DNA of 33,000 nucleotides from Botryllus schlosseri. Its lineage: Eukaryota. Of the stretch, positions 1 to 31,599 are shown in pieces. Every line of letters begins with the position of its first letter. The first letter of the stretch is position 1. The notes below the pieces were generated by a model that searched no databases, was not told the origin of the DNA, and worked only from the letters and a program-made list of their open reading frames with translations. The stretch spans positions 13,144,001 through 13,177,000 of the forward strand of contig CM119383.1 of assembly GCA_051294905.1 (NCBI GenBank). The letters are read 5' to 3'. A program made the translations under genes and the position numbers.

Positions 1-178
1 TATCTGAATGATGCAATACTACAAACCAAATGGTTATCCTAGAGTGAAAAACGATGATATCAAGTAATTATATTGAATGTTTAACATAGCGAATTGTGGA
101 TAATTTTATATATAATACTGGTAGCAAATGTGTTAATAGGAAGCTTAATCAGGTCAAATGTAACATGAGATAGCTTAC

Positions 179-297
179 CTCAGTCAATTCAAATCCTGCA
201 GCGCAGCCACACGAATACGAGCCATAGTTATTCCGGCACCGCATCATGCATCCACCATTTTCTGTTTGACATTCGTCAACGTCGTTACAGACGAAAT
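179..297 (-). CDS. Exon: cbEGF ([40 protein letters not shown])
   Basis: Acceptor TTCAG, donor GTAAGC, phase 1->0; canonical calcium-binding EGF spacing; too short for the ORF track. Confidence 0.9.
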
Positions 298-15200: not shown

Positions 15201-18200
15201 CGCATATTCCATTAGGGCAAGCGGATTCCGTGCAGTTGAGCGGATCAATACAATAATTTCCAATCATCTCAAAGCCAGCATCACAGACACAAGAGAAAGA
15301 TCCTAACAATAACAAGGACTCGCTAGTATAAATTAATTGAATGCAGAGCAATATCTCACCTTCCGTATTGTGACATGTCGAAAAGGAAGGGCATACGTTA
15401 ACATCCAAACATTCATCAACGTCTATGCAATCGCCCCAATGGTACTTCAGACCTCGAGGGCAATCCACAATGCATATTTCTGAGATAAAGTAAATGGAAA
15501 TATATCAAGACAATATATTAAGTCCATGAAGATGTATCACACATCCTCATAGATTTCTTATGTGTATTTGAGATATGGGCACTGAAAGGCATCGGTCATG
15601 TCACATTGTCAATTATCATAATCAACTGCATTCTTCATTTCACTGTTATAGTTTGAATAATCTCCCATTCTTTGGGATGTTTGTTGTGTCATGTTGTGTT
15701 TTTCAAACAATAGACTGCAATTTATTTTATCATACAGCACTAATGAACCAATTCTAAGTCAGTGCGATCCATCATTCATTACCATAAAGATATGAACAAA
15801 TATACTACTTTACCTCCGTCTGTAGTTTGACAATTTGACAAACGTGAACAATTCCCGTATTGATCTAGCAACAGATCATCTGGACATGCGCACGAAAACC
15901 CACGATACTTGTCCACGCAAAAGGCTGGAGGTGTACAATTATGAACTCTCATTACGCATTCGTTCATAAGTTTTGATCCGCAATCCATAAAATATTCTTC
16001 TTGCCACAAATTACTACCCGCAACAATCTACAGACAATGAAGAAATACTAGTTCCGAAAACTTTTTCTGACTGAAAACTAAATTCGTAAATTCATAAGCA
16101 AAAGACAAGCTCACCTAATGACTTGCTCTGAAAAGAAGCATTGAACTGATGAATTTAAAATGGCTACAATGAGGACAACACACAACATATTCTATTTTAT
16201 TTAAATTAAAGCATTGTTTCTTTGTTTCCATGCACTGCTGTCACTGGCACAAAAAGAAAAACTTTTGCTTACATGCTTTGCGACCACCGTACAAATGACA
16301 TAGCACTATATTACAGGTGGAAAGTATTATTGAAAATCAATAAATCACAGTAATCCGGTATATAAATACAATGCCATGATGATTCATAACAGAAATCAGT
16401 CTCCAATCAGATACGTTTATACAAAGTGTAATATCGCCACCGTTTTATTTTCATTATGGAAAAACATACTGATGTTGACATACTGTAACCACAATACAGT
16501 ATAGGTAATTCTATTCCACTAAACTGTACCATAACACATCAATAAGTTACCTGCTCCATTGACGATTCATCCCATACGGACACCAATAGAAAAACGTTAC
16601 CCCAGCACCATTTGAATATCGTGCTGTCCAAGTCTATATTTCCCAAAAACACAGCGACATCATCAAACGTTGCTTGACCATTTGCTATCTCTTTTTCAGC
16701 AATGGAAGATTCGGTTTTTATTCGAATACAGCTTTCGGTGTGCATCATGGTTTGGAAAGTGGAATAATTTGCAAAGGAATATTTTTCAAAGTCTCTTGCA
16801 CACATGTAGAAGCTAGCAATCGGTTTTATGCTTTGAACTTGCAGATCAGTGGTGAATCCTTGTATAAATAATGATGCTGAGGTCATTCGAGTAGGCAGTG
16901 ATATTGTCTTATCCATAAACTCCAGTTGAAAACTTTTTAGTTGCGTTCTGTGATAAAAAAATCATTAAAAAGACTTTCTTGATGTGTGTTCTGTACTTCA
17001 CATTCTTACCCATTCAATAATAATGGCATATTACCTTTGATTGGAGACGTGTTCCTAACAGTGCTTATAAAGAGGAATTCTTCGGAACACTTTTGGTTCC
17101 TTTGGAGTGCTATGAGGTGTCACCAAGTCTCAAACATGATTTTATATACTATCATACATAGCCTCGTTATTATATGAGTAGGCTATTTAAAAAAATATAT
17201 GTCAATTACTATCTGAATCATGAATATATCTATGTAGTAAGTAATGTTTGGATATCTGCCATGAATAGGTAGTGTATCCGTCTCCCTAGATGATTGACAA
17301 TAATTATTATTATTTTGATTGCCATGGCAAAGTTATACGATGAAAATGTATAAATCGTTGACAATTCACAGTCGTCAAATACAAATATGGCGAAATGATT
17401 TCGAACGATATTATTTTCGTGTGTTAATACTCACTTGGTTTCAGTCGGGCAGTTCATCAAGGTTAATTCCTCTAAGACATGAGCATTATTTAGTAGAGAC
17501 ATCTCGACAAAACTGCTACCTCTCGTGATGAATGCCATTACCTGAAAGATGCAAATAGCAATGGTGACACAGTTGCATAATTTGGTAACAATATGTCAAG
17601 ATTTACTATCGAGCGTAACTATTTACATATCTGCTCACCGGCGTCCTCACATACCACTTATAAAAATATCCAAATTTGAAATGGACTTCAATCACAATCA
17701 TTTTCTGATATTTTCATGCAATTGTTTGCGTTTATCACAATATTAGTGCCAATTATGTCAATAATGTGATGTCCGCACAAAGTATTCACAAATATTTCAT
17801 GTGTGAACACTAAAATTTATGACCATCCGTATTGAGACCTCATACGTTGATGAATATTATGAGCTGTTACATACTCGATACTCACATGCATCAAGATAAT
17901 TATTGAAAAGGGGAGGTGTTGTAGCAATTTGATAACTCGGTCAATATTCAACCTTAGACAAACATCAAAACATGTAATTTCTGAGACCACTGATACAAAT
18001 CAGAAAAGCGTGGATTGTATCAGACATGTTGTTGTGCATACCTTCAAAGAACCGATGTTCGTCTGAGAACAGATTTCCATGACAGTATTGTTGTCGATTT
18101 GCAAAGGGAGCACTAGTTCGAATCCTTTTGTTATCGCATTGTGAGTAGTGTGCTCATGAGTATACGTCAAGTCAGGAAGTTCCCGCTCCATCAAAGGGAT

Positions 18201-21200
18201 CACTTTCACTTCACCAGAGAGGCTATATGTAAACTCTAGCTTCACTGTAATGACGACACTATCGAGAAAGTTTTGGAAAGTGTCAAGAACTGAAAAATTC
18301 CATAGCTGCACCGCATACAATCGATCAACTGAAACTGGCTGGTGATATATCTGCATTTTCATTTGTACAGATGTATTTTTGTTTAGCTCCAGCGCATCAT
18401 GTGATAAAGAATTTTGATCAAGCCAGTTAATACCGGTTACCACCGGTGGAAACAGCTCGAGATCCGCAACTCCAAAGCAGTCAATTTTAAAGGTGACATA
18501 CTTCACGTTGTTGTACAAGACTTGATCAACGGTATAATATAGGTCATTAAACTTCACGTTTGGTTTGATAGTGATCTGCTGTACAATCTCTAATAAGTCT
18601 GTAGTGTCGTTGTCTCTTGTGTGCAAAGCACAAATGTCACTGGAAACATTCATGTTGAATATAACGGTAAAATTCACTTGTTCTAACACATTCCAATACA
18701 TTCTTTGTTGTGATGTCACTGTCCAGTCATACTGTAAAAGATTTCCTGTTGTTTCGATGGAAAAGAAGGATTCAGACTCTTCCCGTTGCAGCTGAAATTG
18801 CCCGAAGTTCCATACCGAAACCTGCATTCTCACTTTCGAACTCTTCAACGGATCAAGTATAATGTCTTCGTGGAAATATTCGTGAACATCGATACTGGTC
18901 TGTAGGCTGTGAAAAGACGACTCTGTCCAAACAAGCACGTCACCTGGGCATTGAACCTTGACAATCTTTTCGAGATAATTATCGCTTTTGTCATTATCAA
19001 TGATAAAGTTTCCATTGTCTTCAACCGATAAGGATATGTGTGACTGTCCGCAAAGCGTTCCAATCAGTCGAATGGGAATTGTGAAAGTAGACTGAATTGT
19101 GATGGAAGGTACGTGGTAACGTTGTATCTTGAACAGTTCGTCGTCAGAGACTACTGCGCCGATGGATTCGTTGAAAATTATGAACGAGCCAGCTTGAAGA
19201 GTGTTGGATTTATCACCGATGCGAATCACTAATTGCAGTTTGACGAAGTTTGCGGTATCGGTGGTGTCGTCCAAAGTTCTGTAAGATGATGTAAACAAGA
19301 CAGAATTGGTCAAAGTTGACAATATTGCTGCTCAAGTAGAAGTAGGAGTAATGCCATAGATTTCTACGCAATTACGCATGAAAGTTCCAAATTCATAGAC
19401 ATATCATAACTAGGGCTGGACACAATGATTCGAGTACTCGAATCTTAATCGAGTATTAATTTTAATGATTCGAGTCGAGTAGTAGGAGATATTTTTGAGT
19501 ATTGGAATTATACGCCCCTAGCCACTAACACAGTGGTTCCCAACGTGGGCAATATTGAGAAACGAAGATGCGAAAAGGGGGCGACTGGGGGCGAAAATGT
19601 TAGATCGTTCTATGAGCTGTATTTAATTAACACGCCTAAAAATGCATGTGAAGACGGCTTATTTTGCATATGACTCGAAAAAGAGGTCAACTCAACGGAA
19701 GGTAGATGCGGTGACTGGTTCTCCGAGCACCTACCACCTTGGAAAAACGGCCTTTTTTATTAAATTCACCAGCGATAAGAGTTGGGTGAATAAATTTCCC
19801 GATTATACGTCCTCTTTTTCCGATCCATAAATATGGGGGGCGAAAACTTGTGTCGAGACTGATAAGGGGTCGATCAGTCGGAAAAGATTGGGAGTCAATG
19901 CACTAAGAGTTAATGTGTCAACGAGAATGATAGTTTTTATGCTATCTCCTCTCTAGAAGCCTTGAATCCTCTGTTGACCGTATCGCAGCACACGAAACAT
20001 GTAGTACAAAGCTAAGCACGTTAGTCAAAATTACATTTCCGTGAAGTCGTGATGAACGCACTGCATTGTCACTAAGTCCAATGTAATTGGCAAGGTAGAT
20101 AATATACCAACATATCTTGAATGTGATTTAAAACTGGCCTCGTGTTCTTTGTGGTCGCATAAAAGGTACATAGGCTATATGTGCTATCCACATCATTCAT
20201 GCTGTTATGACATTACAATGAGTGATACTCGAATACTCGACTCGAAGCTTAATACTCAATTCAGAGTCAACCAATCACTCGGGTACTCGATTTTGCCCAG
20301 CCCTAGTCACAACTATTTCAATTAAAAGCAGAAAACGGTATTCTGAAAAGAAAGCGGGATTATTTTAACACCCGGTATGATATGTTACGACAGTGGTTCT
20401 CAATCTTTTTGTCCCCGCGGACCTTCACAAGTTCTAGTTCAAATATAACTCAATTATCATGCAACAGCCATCTTCTTTTGAAAATATTAACTGTATGCTG
20501 CTGATAAACAGCAACAAAATGACTTTTTTTGTTTAAAGGGGCACTGCACTCTAAAAATGATGTGGTCTCAAATTGAAGGGCAAAACGAAAAAATGTTTGG
20601 CCGCGGCTGTTTTCTTCATAATGCCACCGTAATGGAGCTGCAATTTATTGAAATTTCCACAAGAACTTCACGCTCCAGCAGTCAAGCAGAGATTGAATAT
20701 GTCGTACACGACAGAAATAGAATACACTAGGCACGATTTTGACATAAGTATCATGGCTGAACATCTTCCGTTGAACGCGGTATCTAAACAACCTTGGTGC
20801 GTACGACATCTTTCCTTCATAACATCGGCTGAGAACTACATAAAGTTCGATCTCTACATGACTGCTGGACCGTGAAGTTCTTGTGGAAATTTCAATAAAT
20901 TGCAGCTCCATTACAGTGGCGTTCTGAAGAAAACAGCTGCGGCCAAAAACTTTTTTTCGTTCTGCCCTTCAATTTGAGACCACATCATTTTTAGAGTGCA
21001 GTGCCCCTTTAAAATAGCATCATATTATATGTAGAAATTGGGTAGACTTATATTATTTCAAATCGAATTCAGTAGTTGGATTTCTTGAAATGCATGGTCA
21101 TGTCTTGAGACAGAGAGAGAGAGATATGGTATTCTTTTTCGCCATCACCATCGAGATGCTTTGACGACGGAGATGCGATACGGCCTTTATAGTAAGGTCA

Positions 21201-24200
21201 TCTAGTCTGCACCCCCGTTTTTTCTCCTCCGTGCTATCCGTGATTGCTGAGCGCCTAGCAGGATAGCCGCGGATACCAGTTTTCGAGTCTTTGGTCTGAC
21301 CCGACCGGGGGTCGAACCCACAACCTACCGATCGAGAAGCCGGACGCACAACTATTACACTATCTCGCTCGGTGAAAATCCATTTGATATGAACGAGAGC
21401 CTAAAATCCAGTTCCACAAACATAGAAGATGATGAATGTAGCATTAACGTGTAACGCTTCCAACGACACATTTGGGTATGATCGCAACATAGATGACAAC
21501 AAAAGTGAGAAACACATTTTTATTACTCAAAATATGACTCCCAAGCCTAGTCATTTCTATCTACCAGCTCATCTTCAAGTTCAGAGGAGAAAATGGATTC
21601 TACGCCGAGGTTTCAATTCCTTAATTTGGACAGATTAGGAAATAAAACGTCAGGAATTTTAAATTCAAACGGCTGTTCACTAATTAGCTGAGTCTGAAAA
21701 CTTCAAATCCAAAATGTTTTGCAAACATTTCGCAGTCATAGCCTGATTGAGCTTATTACTCCTACTTTAGTTTTTCCACAAACCCCAGTGAAACAACATC
21801 TCTAAAAACAGCAATATGTTTTATCAGTAGTCTATTGACAATTTGCTAATTGCACAGTAGGATATAACGCCCATTTTGATGATGGGAGTCCTGAAGTTTT
21901 AGAAGCTAGCAAATTCCTTGTGATTTTCCTGATTTAAATATATTACAGATTAGGTTTTCATTAATCTTGCAAATTTAGAGGATTCGCGGGCCCCTAGCGG
22001 TTCGCGAACCACCGGTTGAGAAACATGATTTTAGTATCTTGAAAAAATGTTGTATGTGTAATAATTATGGTTTCGTTACTAGTTTCACCATCAGAACACA
22101 GGTTTGGTCGGCTGTGTGAAGCACACTGACTCATGAACCGAAGGTGCGGGCGAAAGCACTAGAAATCATAAACGGAAATAATCAAATACTATATTGGTAT
22201 GTATCTGAATCTCAAACAGTTTTAGCAGTCAGATAGAACTTCAAAGGAAGCCTCTTACCTCTGAAGTTTCGACGAAATGGAAGCTACAAATGAGCTGCTT
22301 CCCGTTATCCGGACAACGCCATTGTCCGACAAAGAGAAATCGTCCAAAACCAAATAGGAATCATCAGCCGCACCATCGAATTCTCTCAAGTTTGCGACCG
22401 ACCCCAGGGGCAAAGAAAACCAATTGTTACCCCACTGCTTGTCGGCATCAATCAAGGGACCTGGAAATTGATACGTAAACCTATTTACTTAGTACATCGA
22501 ACCCTAATAAAAATATGAAGTCAATGAAATATTAATTAAGTAAAAGGCGGCATGAAAATATCTATTTTGTCTCACAAATATCTACCATGCAAAGAAACGT
22601 GAATGTTAGGAAATAAATTTATTGTAAATATTGGCAGTATGGGTACTTACATGTGATCTGAATAATTAGGTATTTCTGACGGCCGTCTGCGCAAGATGTG
22701 AAAGAAAGACTGAGGTTGCCTTTGGCTCGAATATGAAGCGATGAGCTAGAAATTACACAAATGACTGTGTCAAAATTTGAGGAACTAAAATAGTGCAAAC
22801 ACAAAAAGCAATCCTTATTCTGCATATTCTGCATTGAGATACATATTATGAAGATTATTATCTAAAACCTTACACCTGTTTTTCTAATACATGTCATCAA
22901 CGTCTAGTAACAATGAATGCAATAAAAAATGAGATACATTTCAAATTTGGATTATCATGGATGGTAATCGTGCATTCTAGAAAAATATTCCCGTCGATAC
23001 AGATATTTACTCGAGTGGTAGCGTTTTGAACTACTTTCACTTCTACTTGAGAGGATTTTATCAAAATTACTTACTTTTCACGATTTGGATTTTGTAATGA
23101 AGAAAGGGGTGTATTCCCGTCAAGTTTATGAGTGGAATTGTCATAACGTCTGGGGGAAATAGCCAGGGGCTGTATCATGGTAACTGGACACATTTTCAAA
23201 AATTGCACCAATTTGTAGTGGAATTAGTCATGGAAATGCACCTGAAATTTGAAAAGCAGCCACTTATGATCGGCTACTAAAAGTAGGCAACGTCTCGATC
23301 AAATCAAATTTTTGAAACTATCCGAGTACTTTACTAATCTTGATTTTCTACTTCCACTTCAAACAGTTTTGAAAGGTCTTGGAAATTGCTACTTTTAAAT
23401 GTGATTGAGTATGATTAAACATGATTATTTCTTTTCCTCGGGTACCAGCGATGACTACATCAATCACTTCTGGATTGATATTTGGTTGAAAGCTTAGCAT
23501 TTCCTGCTATATTCAATTCATGTGAACCTCTCTTTGATTTACATCATATTTGGATATATCAACGTCATGTCATAGGAAATTCTGATACGAACCTGTTACC
23601 AACATAAAAATTTGAGCTTTGTACGCGAAGTCGCACTACTTCGTCAAAAGTTCTGTCTAATAGCGGATCATAGGAGACGTAAGCTTTCCAAACAAAATCG
23701 CCATCATGCATTGCTTGTTTCAGAATTGTGGAATTGGCAAATGAAAGCGACGCCGTCACCAAGATAGGAGTATCCACAAAGCATGATAACTTTATCCATG
23801 GCAACACCGATATGACAGACACGTCCTTAACATGATACACATCATCTAAAAGAAAATTATCATAAAACTTGTATTACGCACCAAGTCATTATGACAATGA
23901 CCAGATTTTCTAACCTATGCATCGGATGAACAACTTCTTTGTAATGGAATCATTAGGCGTATAGGGATCAACACAGTGCAGAGCATTCTTGTTGATAGTA
24001 GCCACGATTTCGGTGTGACCACAAAACATAGCATTCCAGCCGTGATCTGATGCGAAAATTATTTCCGTGGACACAGGAATACCCAATGATGGATCATCAG
24101 CTTCAATCAAGTCCGATACTGGGTTTGTAATTAGCGGAATGCTGATCTCACCCCTGAAAAAATATGTTCCAATGAGATCTAACAGGAACAGTAAAGCCTG

Positions 24201-24913
24201 TATCCTGATATTGATCTACAAATGCAGTTCTCTGTTACCAATAAAAACTATTTATTTGATAAAGTGCTTGGTTTGTTTGCTTCTGTCAGCATAAACATTA
24301 TGAATTCGAACTGTCAGATCAAATATATATGTATGCCTCCATAATATGAGGATCTCCAAAACTCGACATTAACCCAAATGCTGAACTTGTGACAAAATCA
24401 GTTCGAAATTAGAGTCCACACAGTTATATTCATTATTGCTCCAAAAATTTTTGTTTGGAAAATTAATATTGAATATATTCCTACATATAATTTAAGACCA
24501 AAATCTTGTAGAAATGTAAGAGATAGTAAAGTGTGGAAAAAAATTCAAACCTTATTCAAGTTAGAACGGGCTCACATAAAATTCTGAAGTGATTAGCAAT
24601 CTTACTTCTTCAACTTGTAAATAATAACTTGAGGATCCAACAGTTCACTCAGAACAAGAGTCTGATTCGGCCTGAGATACCGTAACTGGAAGTAGTCTAT
24701 AATGCTGTGCTGTTGTCCTTCTGCGATCATATCAGGTGCAGATGTCTCCTCGATAAACGCATCGCAAAGATCTTCATCAATACCCGGACAATGTAGATTG
24801 GATGCCATTTTTCCATTAAAATATGCAGCTTCAATACCGTGACCTTCCCAAATCAAGGTCAATATCATTATGACACATGAGACAAGAAACAGATCCCTAC
24901 AGTGTCTCGGCAT
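179..24913 (-). CDS. Multi-exon gene (33 exons, 3'-incomplete): large secreted/cell-surface mucin-like protein with CARDB-like repeats, EGF/cbEGF, TSP1, NIDO, AMOP, VWD and C-terminal EGF repeats
   Basis: Exons below have GT(GC)-AG boundaries with matching phases and sum to 6876 nt (2292 codons) without stops. Recognised motifs: DVDEC cbEGF, WSAWS..CS.SCG.G.QTR.R.C (TSP1), [10 protein letters not shown] (NIDO), C..W..EP/CCY/CC..Y..KRP (AMOP), GDPTF.TLDG and GLMGNFD (VWD). Confidence 0.85.
608..733 (-). CDS. Exon: cbEGF ([12 protein letters not shown]...CLCQIGF)
   Basis: Within ORF 549..743; acceptor TTTAG, donor GTAGGC, phase 1->1. Confidence 0.9.
792..1001 (-). CDS. Exon: end of one EGF plus one full EGF-like domain (FTCGSCP..M.GDG..C; [16 protein letters not shown])
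   Basis: Within ORF 724..999; acceptor CCATAG, donor GTGATT, phase 1->1. Confidence 0.9.
1414..1558 (-). CDS. Exon: EGF-like ([14 protein letters not shown]...[10 protein letters not shown])
   Basis: Within ORF 1406..1588; acceptor GTACAG, donor GTAAAT, phase 0->1; 65-nt intron upstream. Confidence 0.85.
1624..1691 (-). CDS. Exon: [23 protein letters not shown], start of post-stalk EGF-like domain
   Basis: Acceptor TTGCAG, donor GTGAGT, phase 1->0; C-x-C-x-N-x-x-x-C pattern typical after the VWD stalk. Confidence 0.8.
1768..2363. mobile_element. Non-autonomous hAT-type MITE, family A copy 1 (596 bp) with subterminal GACTCGAGTC arrays
   Basis: TIR CAGGGTTGTAA...TTACAACCCTG; perfect 8-bp TSD ATATCAAT (1760-1767, 2364-2371); homologous to 8598-9341; no transposase ORF. 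Confidence 0.9.
2530..2685 (+). mobile_element. Retroelement (SINE/LINE) 3' fragment ending in a (TC)n tail
   Basis: Aligns by eye to 11001-11119 in the opposite orientation; shares CAGACTAGATGACCTT (2534-2549) with the SINE at 21194-21209; (TC)n at 2658-2685. Confidence 0.55.
2872..2919 (-). CDS. Candidate small exon ([16 protein letters not shown]) with a GC donor
   Basis: Acceptor CCTTAG; the only open frame is phase 1 and fits both neighbours if AG|GCGTGT is the donor. Confidence 0.4.
3267..3519 (-). CDS. Exon: post-VWD stalk (…[11 protein letters not shown]…[10 protein letters not shown])
   Basis: Within ORF 3241..3669; acceptor TTTCTATTCAG, donor CAG|GTTGGT, phase 0->1. Confidence 0.65.
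3760..4330. repeat. Unclassified interspersed-type repeat with internal ~208-bp and ~146-bp subrepeats and a terminal hairpin
   Basis: TACTGGCTACT(T/C)GATAAAATTGTTAGGT at 3774 and 3982; AAATTTGGTTCAATTCC at 4033 and 4179 (degenerate at ~3824); perfect 29-bp inverted repeat 4233-4261/4293-4321. Confidence 0.6.
4399..4644 (-). CDS. Exon: Cys-containing region following VWD (…[27 protein letters not shown]…)
   Basis: Within ORF 4393..4680; acceptor TTTACCAG, donor GTATAG, phase 0->0. Confidence 0.75.
5608..5834 (-). CDS. Exon: VWD C-terminal part ([11 protein letters not shown]…WEFVKSW)
   Basis: Extends ORF 5521..5802; acceptor TTTCGTCAG, donor GTAAGC, phase 1->0; completes GLMG|NFD. Confidence 0.85.
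6814..6969 (-). CDS. Exon: VWD middle part (…[14 protein letters not shown])
   Basis: Within ORF 6722..7006; acceptor ATTTCAG, donor GTGAGG, phase 1->1. Confidence 0.85.
7801..8145 (-). CDS. Exon: AMOP end / VWD N-terminal part ([20 protein letters not shown]…GQYIL)
   Basis: Within ORF 7664..8137; acceptor ATTCACAG, donor AG|GTTATA, phase 1->1; GDPH-like VWD start. Confidence 0.85.
8598..9341. mobile_element. Non-autonomous hAT-type MITE, family A copy 2 (744 bp)
   Basis: TIR CAGGGTTGTAA...TTCCAACCCTG; perfect 8-bp TSD GACCATAC (8590-8597, 9342-9349); collinear with 1768-2363 but with an extra internal segment at about 8842-9104. Confidence 0.9.
9620..9750 (-). CDS. Exon: AMOP C-terminal part (HSDKSS…LPQMHCC…[11 protein letters not shown])
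   Basis: Within ORF 9549..9791; acceptor CTTTTAG, donor GTAAGT, phase 2->1. Confidence 0.85.
10638..10777 (-). CDS. Exon: AMOP core ([18 protein letters not shown]…)
   Basis: Within ORF 10634..10822; acceptor TTTCTTCAG, donor GTAACG, phase 0->2. Confidence 0.8.
10833..10913 (-). CDS. Exon: AMOP linker ([27 protein letters not shown])
   Basis: Acceptor TATTTCAG, donor AAG|GTAGCT, phase 0->0, 27 codons; 55-nt intron downstream. Confidence 0.65.
11001..11119 (-). mobile_element. Second copy of the retroelement 3' fragment seen at 2530-2685
   Basis: Reverse complement GATCATTCCTATCTGATACCGAATATTG…TAATTCGGTAGGATGAAAA matches the 2560-2652 region. Confidence 0.6.
11613..11725 (-). CDS. Exon: AMOP start ([13 protein letters not shown]…[10 protein letters not shown])
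   Basis: Acceptor GTTTTCAG, donor GTTGGT, phase 1->0; C-x-x-W..EP..CP.T is the AMOP N-terminal signature. Confidence 0.85.
11941..12050 (-). CDS. Exon: NIDO C-terminal part ([11 protein letters not shown]…[14 protein letters not shown])
   Basis: Acceptor TTTTTAG, donor AAG|GTATGT, phase 2->1. Confidence 0.8.
12342..12910 (-). CDS. Exon: NIDO domain (SNGIF…FLPLWA…TVTW…[18 protein letters not shown]); alternative 5' boundary 12986
   Basis: ORF 12338..12937; donor AG|GTAACC; acceptor TGTCTACAG (12910, phase 0) or CTATCCCAG (12986, phase 2). Confidence 0.85.
13271..13553. mobile_element. Degenerate hAT (Buster/Charlie-like) MITE
   Basis: Left CAGTTCTTAAACTGGGGCACATGGACCCC; right GGGTTCACGCC…ATTAAGAAAAATTG; flanks ATATAATC/ATGTAATG match 6/8. 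Confidence 0.45.
13864..13912 (-). CDS. 49-nt exon between the EGF-like segment and NIDO; reading frame ambiguous
   Basis: Acceptor GTGTAG, donor GTGAGT; open in two frames, each giving a consistent path. Confidence 0.65.
14016..14154 (-). CDS. Exon: TSP1 end ([14 protein letters not shown]) plus partial EGF-like segment
   Basis: Within ORF 13913..14230; tandem AAG/CAG acceptor, donor AG|GTATGT (alternative 14005). Confidence 0.8.
14492..14637 (-). CDS. Exon: thrombospondin type-1 repeat ([25 protein letters not shown])
   Basis: Within ORF 14403..14651; acceptor TTTTAG, donor GTAAGG, phase 2->1. Confidence 0.92.
15179..15302 (-). CDS. Exon: cbEGF end plus next EGF-like ([10 protein letters not shown]…[11 protein letters not shown])
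   Basis: Within ORF 15154..15468; acceptor TTGTTAG, donor GTATGG, phase 1->2. Confidence 0.88.
15360..15479 (-). CDS. Exon: EGF end / cbEGF start (DCPRG…[13 protein letters not shown]…CHNTEG)
   Basis: Acceptor ATCTCAG, donor GTGAGA, phase 1->1. Confidence 0.88.
15814..16027 (-). CDS. Exon: end of last CARDB-like repeat plus cbEGF (MNEC…[13 protein letters not shown])
   Basis: Extends ORF 15779..16009; acceptor GTCTGTAG, donor GTAAAG, phase 0->1. Confidence 0.88.
16551..16947 (-). CDS. Exon: CARDB-like beta-sandwich repeat (…[19 protein letters not shown])
   Basis: Extends ORF 16539..16916; acceptor TTTATCACAG, donor CAG|GTAACT, phase 2->0. Confidence 0.8.
17010..17054 (-). CDS. Small exon ([15 protein letters not shown])
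   Basis: Donor GTAAGA; acceptor TGTTAG chosen to fit phase 2->2; 5' boundary uncertain. Confidence 0.5.
17435..17541 (-). CDS. Exon ([17 protein letters not shown]…NCPTET)
   Basis: Acceptor CTTTCAG, donor GTGAGT, single open frame, phase 0->2. Confidence 0.75.
18042..19278 (-). CDS. Large exon (1237 nt): several beta-sandwich/CARDB-like repeats
   Basis: ORF 18000..19322; acceptor TCTTACAG, donor AAG|GTATGC, phase 2->0; contains [41 protein letters not shown]. Confidence 0.85.
19411..20305. mobile_element. Non-autonomous hAT-type element, family B, with TCGAG/CTCGA subterminal motifs; host of a nested MITE
   Basis: TIR TAGGGCTGG(A/G)CA…TGCCCAGCCCTA; flanks ATCATAAC/GTCACAAC (6/8, both transitions); 18-bp palindrome GATTCGAGTACTCGAATC at 19427-19444. 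Confidence 0.75.
19531..19900. mobile_element. hAT (Buster/Charlie-like) MITE, family C copy 1, nested in the 19411-20305 element
   Basis: Ends CAGTGGTTCCCAA…TTGGGAGTCAATG; TSD CACTAACA/CACTAAGA; homologous along its length to 27575-27960. Confidence 0.85.
20537..21008. mobile_element. Kolobok-like non-autonomous foldback element (472 bp, ~150-bp TIRs)
   Basis: TTAA on both sides (20533-20536, 21009-21012); termini AGGGGCACTGCAC…GTGCAGTGCCCCT; near-perfect inverted arms 20537-20684 / 20859-21008. Confidence 0.85.
21107..21373 (-). mobile_element. tRNA-derived SINE with (TC)n tail
   Basis: Minus strand: A-box-like TAGTGTAATAGT (~21351-21362), B-box GGTTCGACCCC (21308-21318), body GGGTCAGACCAAAGACTCGAAAACTGGTATCC…GGCGCTCAGCA, (TC)n tail at 21107-21124. 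Confidence 0.8.
22259..22460 (-). CDS. Exon ([20 protein letters not shown]…ISSKLQR)
   Basis: ORF 22255..22455; acceptor TTTCCAG, donor AG|GTAAGA, phase 1->2. Confidence 0.8.
22651..22784 (-). CDS. Exon ([24 protein letters not shown]…IIQIT); alternative 5' boundary 22764
   Basis: Within ORF 22619..22834; donor GTAAGT; acceptor ATTTTAG. Confidence 0.7.
23075..23149 (-). CDS. 75-nt exon, open in two frames
   Basis: Strong acceptor TTTCCCCCAG and donor GTAAGT; length is a multiple of 3. Confidence 0.6.
23593..23845 (-). CDS. Exon: CARDB-like repeat N-half ([11 protein letters not shown]…[20 protein letters not shown])
   Basis: ORF 23565..23840; acceptor TTCTTTTAG; donor AG|GTTCGT (alternative 23604). 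Confidence 0.75.
23915..24153 (-). CDS. Exon: CARDB-like repeat C-half ([13 protein letters not shown]…[13 protein letters not shown])
   Basis: Extends ORF 23910..24110; acceptor TTTTTTCAG, donor GTTAGA, phase 2->1. Confidence 0.8.
24606..24913 (-). CDS. Putative first coding exon with signal-peptide-like N-terminus ([26 protein letters not shown])
   Basis: ORF 24602..24913; donor GTAAGA in phase 2 matches the next exon; splice acceptor TTTGTAG 36 nt upstream of the ATG (exon boundary 24949). Confidence 0.75.
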
Positions 24914-25019
24914 AGTACATGTCAGTGCAGATGGCAGCCGATCTCGTACCTACAAACTCAATAAAATCAAAAAAGATGCATCACATTCAGGTTGCTTTCA
25001 TAAAATGTAAGCCTGCCTA

Positions 25020-25127
25020 TCACACGTTTTTTAAAGAACCTGTTTCGGAATCCAATGATAAAATCATCACTTCAATTTGGAAATAAATGTCCATTTCATG
25101 AAGAAAACCAACAGTACAGGAATATTC
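25020..25127 (-). CDS. Candidate terminal (or linking) exon of the upstream region (EYSCTVGFLHEMDIYFQIEVMILSLDSETGSLKNV*)
   Basis: Acceptor GTGTAG, 35 open codons then TGA; weak donor AAC|GTGTGA at 25026/25025 would be in phase with the 24949 acceptor. Confidence 0.4.
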   Translation of the reverse strand, partial: EYSCTVGFLHEMDIYFQIEVMILSLDSETGSLKNV

Positions 25128-28100
25128 CTACACAATTTGAGTAGCTTAATCGAACACAACAAGCGATGTTTGAATATACACTTGTATAACCTTTCTCAAA
25201 TGTTTATTCGAGCAACTATGGGAATTTTGATGCACTCTGCCTTAGCACTATTGAATTCTGGTTTAATCGATAGAGATTCAACTATATTCGATCACTACAG
25301 TGTCAAAAATTCACTGTATTAGATAAATGTTTGTGATGACAATGAGTTTAAGCCGTATTGCATTATGGCTTGTATTAAAAGAGGGGGAACAAAAAGAATC
25401 AAAATAAATTTATCCTACAAAAATTCCGTAAAGCAAAATGAGTTTATGTATAATTATAAATAAATGCCTAAACATTGGTTGATTCGTACTTATGAGAATG
25501 TTCAGTGCAAAACAAAATCACCACATCATCAAATACATTACTCATTCAGCAGTGCCTTACCTGAGACAGAAAGCATATACCGCAGTTGCCCACTAACACA
25601 GAACATGTCTTCAAATGCAGCAATTCCGTTGCAAGATATAGTAGCCACAGTGTGTTGCTCAAAATCTAAAACAAGATCCATAGCAGATTTAATGATTCCA
25701 TGTCATACTTTTCGCGATCATACCTGTATCAATCTCGGTGACATTGCATTTGATAGTCAAAGAAGCCGGTAATGTGAAATTATTCGCATGAATGTGATCA
25801 ACGGCTATTAAGAGTTCAACTTTGATTTGCGCAAAGTCCAATTTGGTTTCATTCAATTCCACAAGAGCAGCTCGTTGGAAAATATCGTCTACGACTTCAA
25901 ATTTAATTGGGTACGGGATCGATGGATATACGGTGCTTTGAAGTGCATATTTAATGTCAGCGTATATAGACGCATACTCAGAATCACAAAGAATATACAC
26001 CAACTGATCGTGCTCCATACTGGTCTGTGAATTTGTAATGGGTGAAAAGGTATAGGATTCAAAGTGCAATGTCATTTTCCAAATTTTTCCACAAATCCTG
26101 CTATGTGATGGTATGTTCAGAGGAATGGTATAGTGGGAACTGCCAAGATACAGTCCATTCCTGTTAAAATCCTGGTGATCTAGATAAAACAAACCTACTA
26201 GTCTTTGACCAGATATGAGAGGAATTTCATCAAAGTCTTCATGTTTGGCAAAAGGGTTTTGGTTACTAATCATTACCGACATGCTCATATTCATGTACAC
26301 ATCATTGTTCACAACATCACGGTGGTAGTAATTTTCTTCCGATATGACTTCAATGGTAATTGCCTTATTTGAATGAAGAATAGAGGGGATTTTGGTATTG
26401 ACATGAAAGTATGGTACGCTTAAATATGCGTCTTCACATCCAACCAATTTCAATTCCAGTGCAAGATAGTTGTTGTCATTTTCAATGATCTCTTCATAAA
26501 ACCCTGAAAGGGAATTGAGAAACGTAAATCCAACATAATATGACAATATTTGTTGTCCTTAAAGAAACAAGGAAATTTTACAGTCTAAGGGTGTGAGAAA
26601 TGTTTTAGTTTTGACACCTTCCTATGTTTTCATTATATCGGAATATTGTGGTGTTTTTGAATTAATAAAAATATCAATAAATGACAAACTGAAGTGTTGA
26701 CATGTTAGGAGCCATACATGTGTGTGTAGTACTTTTAGAACTCAGGTATAGGCTGCATAAGCTGTCTTGCTACACACTGTTAAAAAGATGTATTTGAAGT
26801 TTGAAAACAACATTCTTTCAGATAAATACCTACACTCTAGGAATTCGTGAGTAAAAGAGTTTACAATAAACGCAGTGTTTTACTGAGGAATACAACACCT
26901 AAACGAATTCAAATCAAAAATGGAAAGTGATTCGTCAAACCTTGAGATTACTTCACCTCAATGGAATGGGATAGGATAAGCAATGGGCTGATTAGTGGCC
27001 ATGCTTGTGTTACATGGTAATTACTTGGCAGTAAAATATATTGATTGTTCCACAACTCTAATACGACAGTGAGGTGGAGATAATCTTGCTGAGCTCGAAG
27101 TCAAAAAATGTATGGGAAATAATTTACAATTTTCCACTACATAGTCGGAAGAATTTCTCAACTACCATCTTTAGCATGAGCAACGAACCTTCTTTGTCAG
27201 TAGCGGCAATGAGAAAGATAGTGTTATTCAGGTTCATAAAGCGGGAACAAAACTGTATGTCAACGTATTGGAACAGCCCAATCCCGCCTTCGATATCAAA
27301 CACTTGGTTGTACGGTAGATATGAATTCCTAAAAAAACAAGATTGCATCAGTATATGGAAGTCTACGTCCGACAGCACCAGTAATTCTACTTTTTTGGAG
27401 TACTCAAGTCGGTTTTGCCTGCTTACACTGCATACTCAAGTGAGTATGAGATTACTTCCCTTCCACTGATTGTATTAAAATTTTGCAGGCAAAATTACTT
27501 GCTTTTTACACTTTGGAATTTATCAAGTAGAATGCAATCTTAAGATGTGTTTGTATCACATTTACTGGTTATATCATTCCTTCCTAATGTGGCCGACATC
27601 GCCCCAGTGGGCCATTTTGAGAAACAATTGGGCAACTGGGGGCGATAGCGAGCGAAAATGTTAGAACATCCAGTGAGATATATTTAATTACCACAGCTAA
27701 AAATGCACGTGAAGACGGATTATTCCACGTGATGCGATAAGAAAAGTCAACTCAACGGGAAGTAAACGTGGAAACCGGTTTTCCAAGCACCTACTCAGAA
27801 AAAGGACCTTTTTTTAGTCAATTCACCAGCGATTAGAGGTATGTAAATAAATTTTCTGTCTATATGACCTCTTTTTCTGATCCGTAAATATGGAAGGGGG
27901 TGAAAATTTGTATCGAGCTTGATAAGGGGGCGGTGATTCGAAAAAATTTGGGAATCACTGGGTTAAATTGTCATAACAACAGTGTGAAATAGCCTTTGCG
28001 TCACGACAACTGAAAATATTTCTATAAAATTGCACCTATTTCTATTGTAACTAGTCATTTTGCGTTAGTCGCGAAGATGTATTCTTCAATTTCAAAGGTA

Positions 28101-31100
28101 GCCACAAGCGATTATTCCTAAAAGATGGCAGATCTTGGATTATCCAAAGTAATTACTCGTGTACCTTTACCAACATTTCATTTGTATTCCATTCGGAGCA
28201 GCGTCAGTGTATCTTAGATATTGATACTCCTATTTACAGTGTCACTTCTACTTCTACTCATCTAGCACTATCCACAACTGTGACCACCACTGCAGCTCAC
28301 CATACTTCAGAACGAGCCCGGTTGCTGGTGATCCCAGCATAGACCATCACGTCATCTTCCGAAAGCTGACCATCTTTAGAAATGTAGAACGAGTATGTCG
28401 GTCTATGGGACTGGGATCCACTTGAACCTGACTGCTGCGGGTCTTGTAATATTTCTTGATCGATCTCGACGGAAGTCGCTACACCGACACGAAGAGATAT
28501 GGTAACTGGTTGTTTTTGAGATACGTCATACAAATTTGACAGAGAAGTGAAGCTGATAATGGACATATCTACATGGGCAGCCCAGTCCTTCTTGCAGATA
28601 GACACAATTTTAGATGCTTCTTCATGAATTATTGGATCTCCGTTTCCAAAAAGCTGCTCTTTGTTTGAAATTGAAATTCCAAGATACCTGAGAAGCAATA
28701 GATTGAAAACATCATAACTTACGTAGGAGCATACTGTCAATTCAATAATCTAGCATCTGAAATGGGTGATATGGAGATATTGGGAGTTCGTGTTGAATTT
28801 TGAATATTTCTTTTTGCGATTACCACTTTCCATCAATTTATATTTCCCCTGGTTCCAACATTGTCTCTTAGATACACCCAGAGTCTCATATCAAACCTTG
28901 GATGATTAGATGTCAAATATGTCAACACTGGCGAGCTATAAAAACAACTGGTATTCTAGATATCCGATAGTAGCTAATAGTATATTGATTTGAAGGTGAC
29001 ACGGGAAAGAAGTTCAAGATCTTTTTCATTTTCAGCAATGGAATTTAGAATGTAACAGAATTGAATTGAATCCGGATGAAAAACTGTTGCTTTTAAAATC
29101 AATATTAAAATAGTGCTGATAAATTTGTCAAATTTGACACTGACAAGTATTTTAGAAAACGCAAATATAAATTTCGCTAAAACTGTATTTCAAATTGCTT
29201 AGTGGCAACTGATGGAGTCACATAGAATGGAGTGGTCAAATTTAATTTGATGTCATCAACGTTAACTTATTTTTATAAACAAAAATGGCATTCACCATAC
29301 CTTACAATAAAATTAAGAGTAAACAATGAAACACATACCACTCTTTTCGGCATTGCTCAGGTTCCGCATCAATTTGTAGAAAACCTCCGGCGATATATTC
29401 GAATGTGAACATATTTTCATCGGATATAGATTCTATTTTGGAATGAGGAATATTTAGAAATTGACTTCTGTATTTGTCATAATCTTTCCAAAGAAGGTGA
29501 TTGCGTAACGATGAATTTTCAACATAGTAAACAACTCCTTTCGTGCCATCAATGGCTCTTGTTTCCAATTTCATCCTGTTTGGTAAATGATAATAAAGCA
29601 TATTAGCGTATCCTAATAATGCAATCAATTGCATGATAAGCAAATGATGACAGGAGATGAAGACTGAAATGCACGAGGAAAATCGGAAAGTTCAGATAGT
29701 GTTTGATTTTAGCTTTTAGAAGTACGTTCATCATGTTGCGTATGATAACCTTCACTGAACGTTGTTGTACAATCTACATGTACTTTATACCACATACTAA
29801 AATTCGGCGCCCCAAATCAGTTAAGCTTGATTTCACAAGTCTACTTATACGTGACTAAGCGCATTACGTACCTAGATTACATCTGCAAAATTGAAGTAAG
29901 AGTTGAAGAATACTTACTGCATCTCCGCTTCTCTGAATGTATTCATAATAGAACTGCAATCTGACCCATTACAGGTAACTGATAATGCTATTTCAACTGG
30001 CATGGGATATCCAAAGAAGACATGTCTTTGAATATTTTTGATCTGTAAAACAATGTCTTCTATAATGGCCTCTCCACAGACCATAGAAACTATTTACCTT
30101 GACAGAGGTTGATACAAGGGTTGAATTTGCGCTGTCTTCACACACAGAATCGAACGGTATTGAGTGGACACCTGATAAAATCTCAATCGCATGTCTAGGA
30201 AATGTGCAATTCTTACAATCATCTTCCATAACAACCGCTTGAAACATGAGATTATCAATGGCATTGTTTGCGGGCAGGGTTAACATATATTTTCCAGTCC
30301 ACGAGAAAATACGTCGTCGATATAGGCCATTGACAACATCGTCATCTGTTTTAAAATATGAAATTATAAACAGTCGACAAAATATAATTTGGGACGGGCA
30401 TGGGTAAGCTATGTAATCGTTTTGCAATACTGACAGCTTTTACGGTAATATTACTTACAATTACGATACATTAGATTAAGATGTAAACTCAAATTGATAC
30501 TCACCTAGTAAAATGGAGTCCATTTCAAGCAGTTTTCCAGGAAGCGCAGGAGAAACAACAAGATCATGAGTTTCAACAGAGTCTGACGCCAAATCAAGAT
30601 CATAAGATTGATGCAACACATGAATTGCAAAGTCTGCAACAAAATCACTTTGAGAACAGCTTTTGTTTCTGCTACACCGGCGAAAAGATTCGCAATAGGA
30701 CGGTTCACTCGAAAGTTGAATGTTCTGTACCTTTACGATTTGTCGACTGTAACAATCGACTGGTACATGGAAAGCAATGTAGTTATTTGAAAATATAAGG
30801 TCATTAGTATCATCGATCTTCATCAGTAAAATATGCACCCCTAGATTACAAGGCTCGTGAAATACACCGCTGAACAATGTCTTTTCATAATCAAATCCGA
30901 ATGTTATAGATTGATAAAGATAAACTCCATCGTCTGTTGATAAGCATTTGAGAATTTGAGAGTGGAGGATAGCTAACGATACGTCAGAATAGTCAAATAT
31001 TTCATCGCATGATGCAGCAGCAGCCCAGTTAATGACATCACCACATTTGCTGCCAGTAACATGCATCCAAGAATGATACGTGATCCAATGCTCGCTTTCC

Positions 31101-31326
31101 GAGGAAGAACTCTCCTGCTTTATTGATAGCATCTTCCATCCACCGGACTCGGATATATTTTGAGTACTTATGATTTTGACATTGTTCCAATCGTGATTAC
31201 ATGAAATCTTTAACGAAGCGTCACTTTTAGAGAGGCTGCTCGGCGAGCATGTGGAGCTTGATTTGTCATCGTCAAGGCATATCTCCACATATACATTCAC
31301 TTGGCCGCATAAATCTGCCGAGAATG
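25020..31326 (-). CDS. Upstream multi-exon coding region (5'-incomplete) made of CARDB-like beta-sandwich repeats; separate tandem gene or N-terminal part of the gene below
   Basis: Long minus-strand ORFs (274, 144, 113, 147, 84, 285 aa) bounded by splice sites and linkable in phase from 31326 to 25561. Repeated CG..hhh..D...NN...h.h.C and FYISKDGQLSEDD motifs. A donor site (AG|GTAAGT) at 32998/32997 suggests another exon beyond the window edge. Confidence 0.7.
25196..25281 (-). CDS. Candidate exon (VESLSIKPEFNSAKAECIKIPI…), ends at TGA 25196-25198 or at a weak donor at 25217/25216
   Basis: Phase-1 acceptor AATATAG matches the exon ending at 25561; poor pyrimidine tract. Confidence 0.3.
25561..25665 (-). 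CDS. Exon (DFEQHTVATISCNGIAAFEDMFCVSGQLRYMLSVS)
   Basis: Acceptor TGTTTTAG, donor CAG|GTAAGG, phase 1->1; 58-nt intron upstream. Confidence 0.7.
25724..26503 (-). CDS. Exon (780 nt): CARDB-like repeats (FYEEIIENDNNYLALELKLVGC; GLFYLDHQDFNRNGLYLG…ICG)
   Basis: ORF 25689..26546; acceptor CCCTTTCAG, donor CAG|GTATGA, phase 1->1. Confidence 0.85.
27189..27418 (-). CDS. Exon: CARDB-like repeat (…CSRFMNLNNTIFLIAATDKEG)
   Basis: Extends ORF 27124..27378; donor AG|GTTCGT, phase 2->1; joining gives FLIAATDKEGFYEEIIENDNN. Confidence 0.7.
27575..27960. mobile_element. hAT (Buster/Charlie-like) MITE, family C copy 2
   Basis: Right end TTGGGAATCACTG, decayed left end; TSD GGTTATAT/GGTTAAAT; collinear with 19531-19900. 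Confidence 0.8.
28301..28749 (-). CDS. Exon: CARDB-like repeat (…YSFYISKDGQLSEDDVMVY)
   Basis: ORF 28297..28740; donor GTGAGC in phase 2; 5' boundary ambiguous (28749 or 28687). Confidence 0.75.
28878..28935 (-). CDS. Exon start (CSPVLTYLTSNHPRFDMRLW); 3' boundary uncertain, in-frame TGAs follow
   Basis: Acceptor TTTTTATAG in phase 2 matches the exon ending at 29339; donor GTGTAT is weak. Confidence 0.45.
29339..29575 (-). CDS. Exon (QMKLETRAIDGTKGVVYYVENSS…AEPEQCRKE)
   Basis: Within ORF 29302..29643; acceptor CCAAACAG, donor GTATGT, phase 2->2. Confidence 0.75.
29918..30042 (-). CDS. Exon (IKNIQRHVFFGYPMPVEIALSVTCNGSDCSS…)
   Basis: Acceptor TTTTACAG, donor GTAAGT, phase 0->2; 55-nt intron upstream. 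Confidence 0.8.
30098..30429 (-). CDS. Exon (…RRIFSWTGKYMLTLP…STSVK); alternative 5' boundary 30345
   Basis: ORF 29993..30427; donor AAG|GTAAAT, phase 1->0. Confidence 0.7.
30505..31326 (-). CDS. Exon (822 nt): CARDB-like repeats (LCGQVNVYVEICLD…LKISC; CNLGVHILLMKIDDTNDLIFSNNYIAFHVPVDC)
   Basis: Extends ORF 30476..31300; acceptor TGTTACAG, donor G|GTGAGT, phase 1->1. Confidence 0.85.
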
Positions 31327-31599
31327 CTGTAACAGGATTTATTTAAATGTATCATCTGCATACTCAAATATACAGGCACAAATGAATGATTACAACTGAG
31401 TATGGTTGGACATCAACAATATAACTTAACAGGCCTGCTTCACAATATGCACAAGATCAATTATGTTGATTGATAGGATTGGTATGTCCGATTCGATTTT
31501 TGATATTTTTCTAACTTCAAAACAATGCGGTTTGAAATTTCACTGACAAGAGCAATTGAGCACACATATACTAACCAATCCCACGAAGATGCATTAGAG

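Follow-up and report, generated by a model that had tools for sequence, protein, structure and literature searches.

Domains of the CARDB family (PF07705, E-set clan) are Ig-like sandwiches of about 100 aa that occur in tandem arrays on cell-surface proteins, and a seven-strand sandwich topology is found in the MG domains of A2M, C3 and CD109 and in the luminal domain of TRAP-alpha. MUC4 and SUSD2 are membrane proteins built on a NIDO-AMOP-VWD core, with a long variable N-terminal region placed on a conserved base. Most of the giant surface proteins found in invertebrate deuterostomes lack annotation. Here we analyse a repeat array in a gene of Botryllus schlosseri, encoded on the minus strand of a stretch of 33,000 nucleotides (assembly GCA_051294905.1, contig CM119383.1, forward-strand positions 13,144,001 to 13,177,000; hereafter 'the window', in whose numbering positions are given). 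A sequence-only reading of this DNA had proposed at least seven disulfide-clamped, CARDB-like units within an animal gene. Our preferred reading, held with moderate confidence, is that the array is a real orphan repeat array, which would form the E-set sandwich stalk of a giant type-I membrane glycoprotein.

The gene shares with MUC4 and SUSD2 the NIDO-like, VWD and EGF/EGF_CA domains, a single transmembrane segment and a short tail, as well as the long variable N-terminal region on a conserved base. It differs from them in having TSP1 modules, in a NIDO-like region that stays below threshold (18.8 vs 25 bits), in AMOP, which was not detected in the gene, and in the N-terminal region itself, which is a cysteine-clamped domain array, predicted to be folded, rather than a Ser/Thr-rich mucin tandem repeat. 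With CARDB proteins it has in common the tandem arrangement of predicted Ig-like sandwiches at the cell surface. One upstream unit reads LDHNNLLEESDETNNV where CARDB has aDp.n.VaE.nE.NN, and those at 19.0 and 23.9 kb fall on the same columns. Most units, however, show no CARDB signal and all scores are sub-threshold; the units are 30-70% longer, and they carry a conserved Cys pair and in many cases a C-PGD junction, both absent from most of 14 aligned bacterial CARDB domains. In addition, this is an animal gene with many introns. Likeness to the MG and TRAP-alpha domains lies in the topology of one modelled unit (Z 7.9-9.0, rmsd 2.6-3.1 Å over 95-118 residues), whereas there is no sequence or profile signal, the domain architecture is another one and unrelated sandwiches score in the same Z range. 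The closest annotated protein is that of Styela clava LOC120339992 (XP_039264177), a collinear orthologue (residues 6-2541) listed as 'uncharacterized protein', in which many upstream units are missing or unannotated.

Coding evidence and conserved cysteines

The longest stop-free segments of the array comprise 443 aa (18003-19331), 289 aa (25692-26558) and 288 aa (30479-31342), all on the minus strand. When the 443-aa exon was searched exhaustively by HMMER against 1.84 billion cluster representatives, only two true relatives emerged: the Styela protein (25% identity) and a 421-aa open reading frame (ORF) on the Logan contig L002. This contig carries a short-intron orthologue, whose ORFs match the window segments, without change of order, at 23-50% identity. 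Collinearity with the Styela protein extends over the window and into its left flank; the two are 25% identical across the repeats and 33-65% identical across the EGF/VWD domains. Homologues of the 443-aa exon were also sought by word-based searches, with the exon itself and with its alignment across the window, L002 and Styela (A1), and only the L002 ORF came up; no paralogue of this exon was found in the animal's own genome. Because the open segments are collinear with both L002 and the Styela protein, the array exons are, on comparative grounds, real coding exons of one gene.

The multi-exon animal gene postulated by the sequence-only reading is borne out by this collinearity and by canonical splice sites. 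All 15 peptide strings on which it relied are found on the minus strand, exactly or a few bases off (e.g., CNLGVHILL...VPVDC at 30752-30850, FYISKDGQLSEDDV at 28348-28389 and ...VQCPGDVLV at 18930-19052), and its split signature FLIAATDKEG|FYEEIIENDNNY is joined by canonical, in-phase sites (donor AAG|GTTCGT at 27189, acceptor TTTCAG|GG at 26503).

Further large exons follow upstream on the same strand, including an 886-aa open segment that matches an 864-aa ORF of L002. With window coordinates carried on rightward into the upstream loci L004-L007 ('ext'), cysteine-ended units extend to at least ext 62 kb, and on this side the gene continues for at least 30 kb outside the window. As the same gene continues both upstream and downstream of the window, the array would represent one part of the extracellular region of a giant type-I membrane protein; the whole gene is, by its predicted product, such a protein, uncharacterised to date. 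The annotated Styela protein (XP_039264177.2, residues 1-85) starts in the middle of a unit, the one matching the unit that ends at 18930 here. Its gene model is probably N-terminally truncated and may lack many of the repeat exons upstream.

Judged by the count of conserved Cys pairs, the array from 16.0 to 31.3 kb contains about 11-13 units, each 130-175 aa long. Most units end in a Cys pair kept by the orthologue, and Cys is by far the best-conserved residue in the alignments with the orthologue (39 of 57 identical, or 68%, against 26% for all residues). Both Cys of every signature flagged by the sequence-only reading are retained in L002, and in Styela where it covers them, at a spacing of 32-51 residues. 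The exon layout of the units varies: three lie whole within the 443-aa exon, others are cut by two introns. Between 2 and 13 N-glycosylation sequons occur per large exon, and the translations show neither low-complexity nor mucin-like Ser/Thr/Pro tracts. DNA-level direct repeats linking the array exons (15.5-31.5 kb) were not found, the only repeats being a two-copy intronic element and a fold-back element; any protein repetition would therefore be ancient.

Relatedness among the units

Iterative searches with a hidden Markov model (HMM), in which opposite-strand ORFs served as decoys (first decoy at E=0.8), place two units of the window, those that end at 18930 and 23919, in one group with two from further upstream (ext 49.0 and 47.5 kb) and with the orthologues; in the window units it is the C-terminal half that matches. 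The exon of the 23.9 kb unit (E9) entered at E=0.06 and reached 70 bits after its own inclusion in the profile; compared directly with the 19.0 kb unit by hhalign, it gives P=0.0034. The unit at 26.1 kb joins the group at P=0.004 when profiles of all orthologue pairs are aligned, a comparison in which controls with reversed profiles go as low as P=0.002-0.01. Started from unit two or unit three of the 443-aa exon, the HMM iteration recovered orthologues only. The seven flagged signatures are thus related only in part, as far as profiles can tell: those at 19.0, 23.9 and 26.1 kb appear detectably related, and the other four, at 31.3, 30.8, 27.2/26.5 and 16.6/16.0 kb, are without statistical support past the conserved Cys pair. 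The claim of at least seven related disulfide-clamped units therefore holds for the Cys pairs, conserved in all flagged units, and for relatedness in three of the seven. Much the same applies to the recurring mid-domain signature, for which two of the three strings are kept in the orthologue, whereas LFYLDHQDFNRNGLYLG is not, and their mutual likeness is not significant.

Predicted structure

The unit at 25971-26447, modelled from a nine-row alignment (A4) that included its orthologue and the related subgroup, gave an AlphaFold2 model (mab0da223e542) with seven strands, a predicted local distance difference test score (pLDDT) of 69.1 and a predicted template modelling score of 0.66, on which four of five models agree. 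Cys119 lies just before the strand formed by residues 122-134 and Cys155 just after that of residues 139-153, a placement that suits a clamp of the antiparallel F-G hairpin.

A fold search with this unit, for which Z values below 8 are common among unrelated arrangements, returned TRAP-alpha (Z=9.0), NIS1 (8.6), CD109 MG1 (8.5), C3 MG1 (8.3), TMEM106B (8.3), A2M MG1 (7.9) and arrestin-like folds (7.8-7.9). Among ESM Atlas clusters, A2M had the highest template modelling (TM) score (0.56), followed by CARDB (0.53), DUF11 (0.51) and NPCBM_assoc (0.51). A CARDB entry ranked 29th in the AlphaFold DB clusters, and CARDB clusters overall had TM scores of 0.46-0.53. Foldseek against PDB and Swiss-Prot found the same generic E-set sandwiches, with V-set structures at TM 0.29 only. 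IRC22, which we take to be the yeast homologue of TRAP-alpha, matched at a TM of about 0.5. The model supports a generic E-set sandwich as the fold class, with no family singled out. The Ig-like CARDB fold suggested for the units was thus recovered as a seven-strand sandwich in one of them, but CARDB stands among several E-set families without preference.

Relation to CARDB

Pfam scans of 10 exon ORFs, and then of 41 exon ORFs from three species (E<=10), yielded a single sub-threshold CARDB match besides EGF domains; the gathering threshold of the CARDB model is 22.7 bits, and none of the window exons match it or come near it. Neither do the repeats map to an ordinary animal family, the alternative raised by the sequence-only reading: Ig, fn3, cadherin, MG and TRAP models had no match in the 41 ORFs, and an fn3 alignment compared by hhalign with all 15 profiles gave P>=0.05. 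A profile search of PDB sequences gave nothing meaningful, and no relevant literature was found on CARDB in metazoa or on CARDB together with NIDO or AMOP.

The sub-threshold match deserves closer attention. The CARDB HMM was run over all six frames of the 495-Mb genome, and its best match (18.3 bits; E=5e-4 per protein) falls at ext 47517-47597, in the same gene and on the same strand, 14.5 kb upstream of the window. It spans model positions 73-99 only, i.e., the C-terminal motif. A CARDB profile of our own, made from 14 genuine Chloroflexota domains, scored this unit at 19.5 bits against 5.1 for the first decoy and had no other match, be it in the gene, L002 or the Styela protein. By hhalign, the unit (ext 47502-47621) matches CARDB with P=1.3e-6 (probability 91%) over 29 columns; the controls DUF11, NPCBM_assoc and fn3 gave P>=0.4 and the reversed sequence against CARDB 0.33. 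The same unit is linked with the 19.0/23.9 kb subgroup at P=8.7e-4. For this subgroup, the alignment to CARDB falls on the same columns (68-110) at P=0.005-0.1, compared with P>=0.28 for DUF11, NPCBM_assoc and fn3; with the ext 47.5 kb unit removed, columns and register stay correct at P=0.025-0.1 only, and the 23.9 kb unit by itself gives P=0.031. The D-x-x-N-x-V-x-E-x-x-E-x-N-N motif is clear in the ext 47.5 kb unit and weak, albeit in register, at 19.0 and 23.9 kb; in the other units it is absent by score. The N-terminal half of CARDB (positions 1-70) is matched by no unit, the best being the second unit of the 443-aa exon (columns 10-50, P=0.2), and the likeness of the conserved wN.G (N175) of this exon to v.V.N.G in CARDB strand B is seen by eye only. 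The spliced unit at 28.7-26.4 kb, the most CARDB-like by eye, was rejected at -2.3 bits against our CARDB HMM, no better than shuffles. A link with CARDB is plausible from these profiles: specific, short and sub-threshold, it reaches the window only via the ext 47.5 kb unit. The CARDB-like character claimed for the units therefore finds an echo in one upstream unit, weakly tied to those at 19.0 and 23.9 kb, and none of the window units hits PF07705.

Two adjacent open segments in different frames occupy ext 47481-47914 (L005:4481-4914, minus strand), each with a strand F-G type ending, RICVLAEADLSDFQIKNPADNTDSV... and VYCGDMNLRVHLDHNNLLEESDETNNV..., and the second is the genome's best CARDB match. 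The gap that separates them is too short to encode a unit's N-terminal half; the two may represent alternative or duplicated exons.

Searches in ESM feature space gave CARDB and DUF11 clusters only for the 443-aa exon, at weak scores (0.80-0.86) in a range also reached by shuffled sequences; the ESM Atlas features of the 289-aa and 288-aa exons gave no usable or named match. The exhaustive HMMER search returned no real prokaryotic relative of the 443-aa exon, and so an ancient transferred bacterial domain, as had been suggested, is unsupported. One bacterial match (P0003, on L008 of a Chloroflexia metagenome-assembled genome; E=3e-7) was discarded as spurious, since one chance match of 48 residues had been scored five times over. 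P0003 carries five near-identical 95-aa tandem repeats and illustrates how repeat proteins can inflate HMMER scores.

Interpretation and alternative explanations

In our view, about 11-13 domains of extreme divergence follow one another here. They are most likely beta-sandwiches of the Ig-like (E-set) kind, as modelled for one of them, and the conserved Cys pair carried by most probably links the beginning of strand F with the end of strand G. Joined to the further upstream units, the array would constitute an N-terminal, membrane-distal stalk: a chain of disulfide-stabilised, N-glycosylated sandwich domains acting as a stiff, fast-evolving spacer or adhesion array, which may keep the conserved modules off the cell surface on a MUC4/SUSD2-like base. 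The stalk diverges faster than the base (25% vs 33-65% identity with Styela). We infer the fold of most units, the disulfide and the stalk or adhesion function from the single model, the cysteine pattern and the domain order. The repeat matches no catalogued family in the profile searches, and the gene family is, by the same measure, unannotated. Some units may retain a remnant of the CARDB C-terminal motif, and as this holds for a subset, the array may be a very diverged CARDB/DUF11/MG branch of E-set domains.

Several results weigh against this reading. All-versus-all BLASTP of the minus-strand open segments found no similarity between units, only intronic repeat copies and EGF domains, and in hhalign comparisons of orthologue-pair profiles every unit pair outside the subgroup described above did no better than the reversed controls (P=0.002-0.01). 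The AlphaFold2 model of the 443-aa three-unit exon, built from four sequences, is unusable (pLDDT 37), so that a fold shared by all units would be an extrapolation from one usable model. The structural matches (TM about 0.5, Z 8-9) barely exceed the level for unrelated sandwiches. No exon-spanning or exon-covering RNA reads were found at 25.5-31.45 kb in four runs, of each of which 6-13% was read, which is no evidence of silence; transcript and splice pattern are thus predicted, with expression unconfirmed in the four RNA runs sampled.

The most serious competitor takes the units as true CARDB members of the PF07705 lineage, either an animal subfamily or an ancient prokaryotic acquisition that gained introns. 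The genome's best CARDB match does fall inside this very gene, with a specific C-terminal motif (18.3 bits with Pfam, 19.5 with our HMM, P=1.3e-6); the 19.0/23.9 kb subgroup sits on the same columns, to the exclusion of DUF11, NPCBM_assoc and fn3, the 443-aa exon leads to CARDB/DUF11 clusters alone by ESM features, and CARDB clusters are among the nearest predicted shapes. Yet every score lies under the family cut-off and covers some 30 residues, and no window unit matches CARDB, down to -2.3 bits for the best-looking spliced unit. The in-window P values lose significance after correction for about 60 profile comparisons, the ESM scores are within the shuffled range and the two other exons give no such lead, the exhaustive search has no prokaryotic relative, and 130-175 aa per unit stands against about 100 aa for CARDB. 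We regard this explanation as possible though unlikely. Family membership of the array is not established, homology being plausible, from the motif, for a subset of units; specific common descent with CARDB is, in our estimate, doubtful. We would also call unlikely the bolder proposal that the whole N-terminal array (about 25-30 units over more than 45 kb) is an unrecognised metazoan branch of CARDB, equipped with a disulfide clamp and introns and recruited, by ancient descent or old bacterial transfer, as the stalk of a chordate-lineage MUC4-like surface protein.

The region might instead be heterogeneous, with a few related sandwiches and much of the remainder (e.g., the 886-aa upstream exon and 30.7-28.7 kb) made of other folds or linker, the signature being largely a pattern that the reader drew from Cys spacing. 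Most unit pairs indeed lack significant similarity and are equalled by reversed controls, all detectable similarity comes from three of the seven flagged signatures, and the spacing of conserved Cys is irregular in the 886-aa exon. We find this quite unlikely, given that every flagged unit keeps its Cys pair in the orthologue at 32-51 residues, that both models consist mostly of beta strands (including the unusable one of the 443-aa exon) and that the translations are free of low-complexity or mucin-like tracts. Descent from an animal sandwich family, the MG domains of A2M/C3/CD109 or the luminal domain of TRAP-alpha, draws on the top structural matches (TRAP-alpha, CD109, C3 and A2M MG1, at Z=9.0, 8.5, 8.3 and 7.9; the A2M cluster at TM 0.56; IRC22 at about 0.5). 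These Z values, however, are within one unit of those of the unrelated NIS1, arrestin and TMEM106B, no exon ORF has an MG or TRAP match in Pfam, the sole sequence-level signal points to CARDB, and an EGF/TSP1/VWD/transmembrane gene lacks the A2M-type architecture. Such an origin seems very improbable. We therefore retain the orphan array of E-set sandwiches as the preferred reading.

More than 2,000 residues of conserved cysteine-rich ectodomain in this gene are without a match among the catalogued families. The definition of a new E-set repeat family would help to annotate the gene, whose Styela orthologue is 'uncharacterized' and probably N-terminally truncated. A fast stalk on a conserved base is a pattern that may bear on roles in recognition or host-microbe contact. 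If the CARDB link were true, it would place a rare 'bacterial' adhesion module in an animal protein; this striking part of the claim is weakly supported.

Exon map of the array and the membrane-proximal half

All features below are on the minus strand and given in the order of transcription. The first open segment in the array (30479-31342, stop-to-stop limits and not splice sites), which bears exon E3, contains the unit end LCGQVNVYVEICLD...LKISC (31199-31312), the whole unit ending CNLGVHILL...VPVDC and the start of the next. It matches L002:4704-5657 (26.5% identity, E=1e-13), and the alignment with the orthologue shows conserved Cys at residues 12, 48, 100, 133, 165 and 197. The repeat region continues through E4 (29917-30093) and E5 (29305-29691), collinear with L002:6055-6327 and 6228-6488. 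E6 (28301-28687; acceptor CTTCTCAG| at 28687, donor ATG|GTGAGC at 28301) encodes the N-terminal two thirds of a unit and contains FYISKDGQLSEDDV, kept as YLSKDKHISKDDL in L002. Strands E-F of this unit (FCSRFMNLNNTIFLIAATDKEG) lie on E7 (27189-27328; acceptor TTTTTTTAG| at 27328, donor AAG|GTTCGT at 27189), which is compatible in splice phase with E6 and E8 and 43% identical to L002:7203-7367. E8 (25724-26503, splice sites assigned; L002:7336-8256) supplies the last strand of the preceding unit (FYEEIIENDNNYLALELKLVGC), the whole modelled unit at 25971-26447, ending ICGKIWKMTLHF...VYILC, and the start of another.

E9 (23913-24215) encodes the C-terminal half of a unit ending KKLFIRC, a member of the detectable 'd1' subgroup. 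A mid-domain string in E10 (23568-23873) is kept in L002 as NAFVSVDPLLDIQLD, and E11 (22622-22861) is likewise collinear with L002. The 443-aa exon E12 (18003-19331) holds three successive units, ending at C128 (CGQSH...KVQC-PGD, 18930-19052), at C285 and after C421; residues C94, G95, E104, D105, D112, D117, N118, C128, P129, G130, D131, N175, C234, N274, N275, D284 and C285 are invariant across the window, L002 and Styela (A1). The last array unit (15782-16961), in the two segments E13 (16542-16961) and 15782-16027, matches L002 and Styela residues 417-624 and leads directly into the first EGF domain.

The rest of the gene within the window (152-15504) is collinear with Styela. Pfam assigns EGF_CA at 15157-15504, TSP1 at 14406-14708, the sub-threshold NIDO-like region at 12341-13003, VWD at 6725-8167 (Styela orthologue: 36.6 bits, E=7e-9) and EGF domains at 152-1053. 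The transmembrane segment lies about 8 kb past the left edge of the window, and the orthologue ends in a hydrophobic transmembrane stretch followed by a short basic tail. The overall order is N-terminal repeats, EGF, TSP1, NIDO-like, VWD, EGF_CA array, TSP1 and transmembrane segment.

Neighbouring ORFs and intronic elements

Upstream of the repeat gene, a 605-aa ORF on the minus strand (L007:3633-5447, ext 66633-68447) has no Pfam match and is unlike the repeat units. Either a separate gene or a mobile element may account for it. Between repeat exons, an open segment on the minus strand (L005:953-1264, ext 43953-44264) contains a C-type-lectin-like string (SGSWTWEDGSNF) without a Pfam match, which may represent an exon, a separate gene or chance.

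An interspersed repeat is present in two copies with 82% identity (19577-19836 and 27638-27893), located in two different introns and not part of the protein repeats. The only RNA reads mapped at 25.5-31.45 kb sit on the second copy; because their loose ends run into unrelated sequence, they probably derive from other genomic copies of the element. A 3-kb intron harbours a fold-back element (20532-21013) with nested inverted arms of 110 nt (91% complementary) and 67 nt (97%), owing to which both of its strands encode the same 17-residue peptide. This element looks like a miniature inverted-repeat transposable element.

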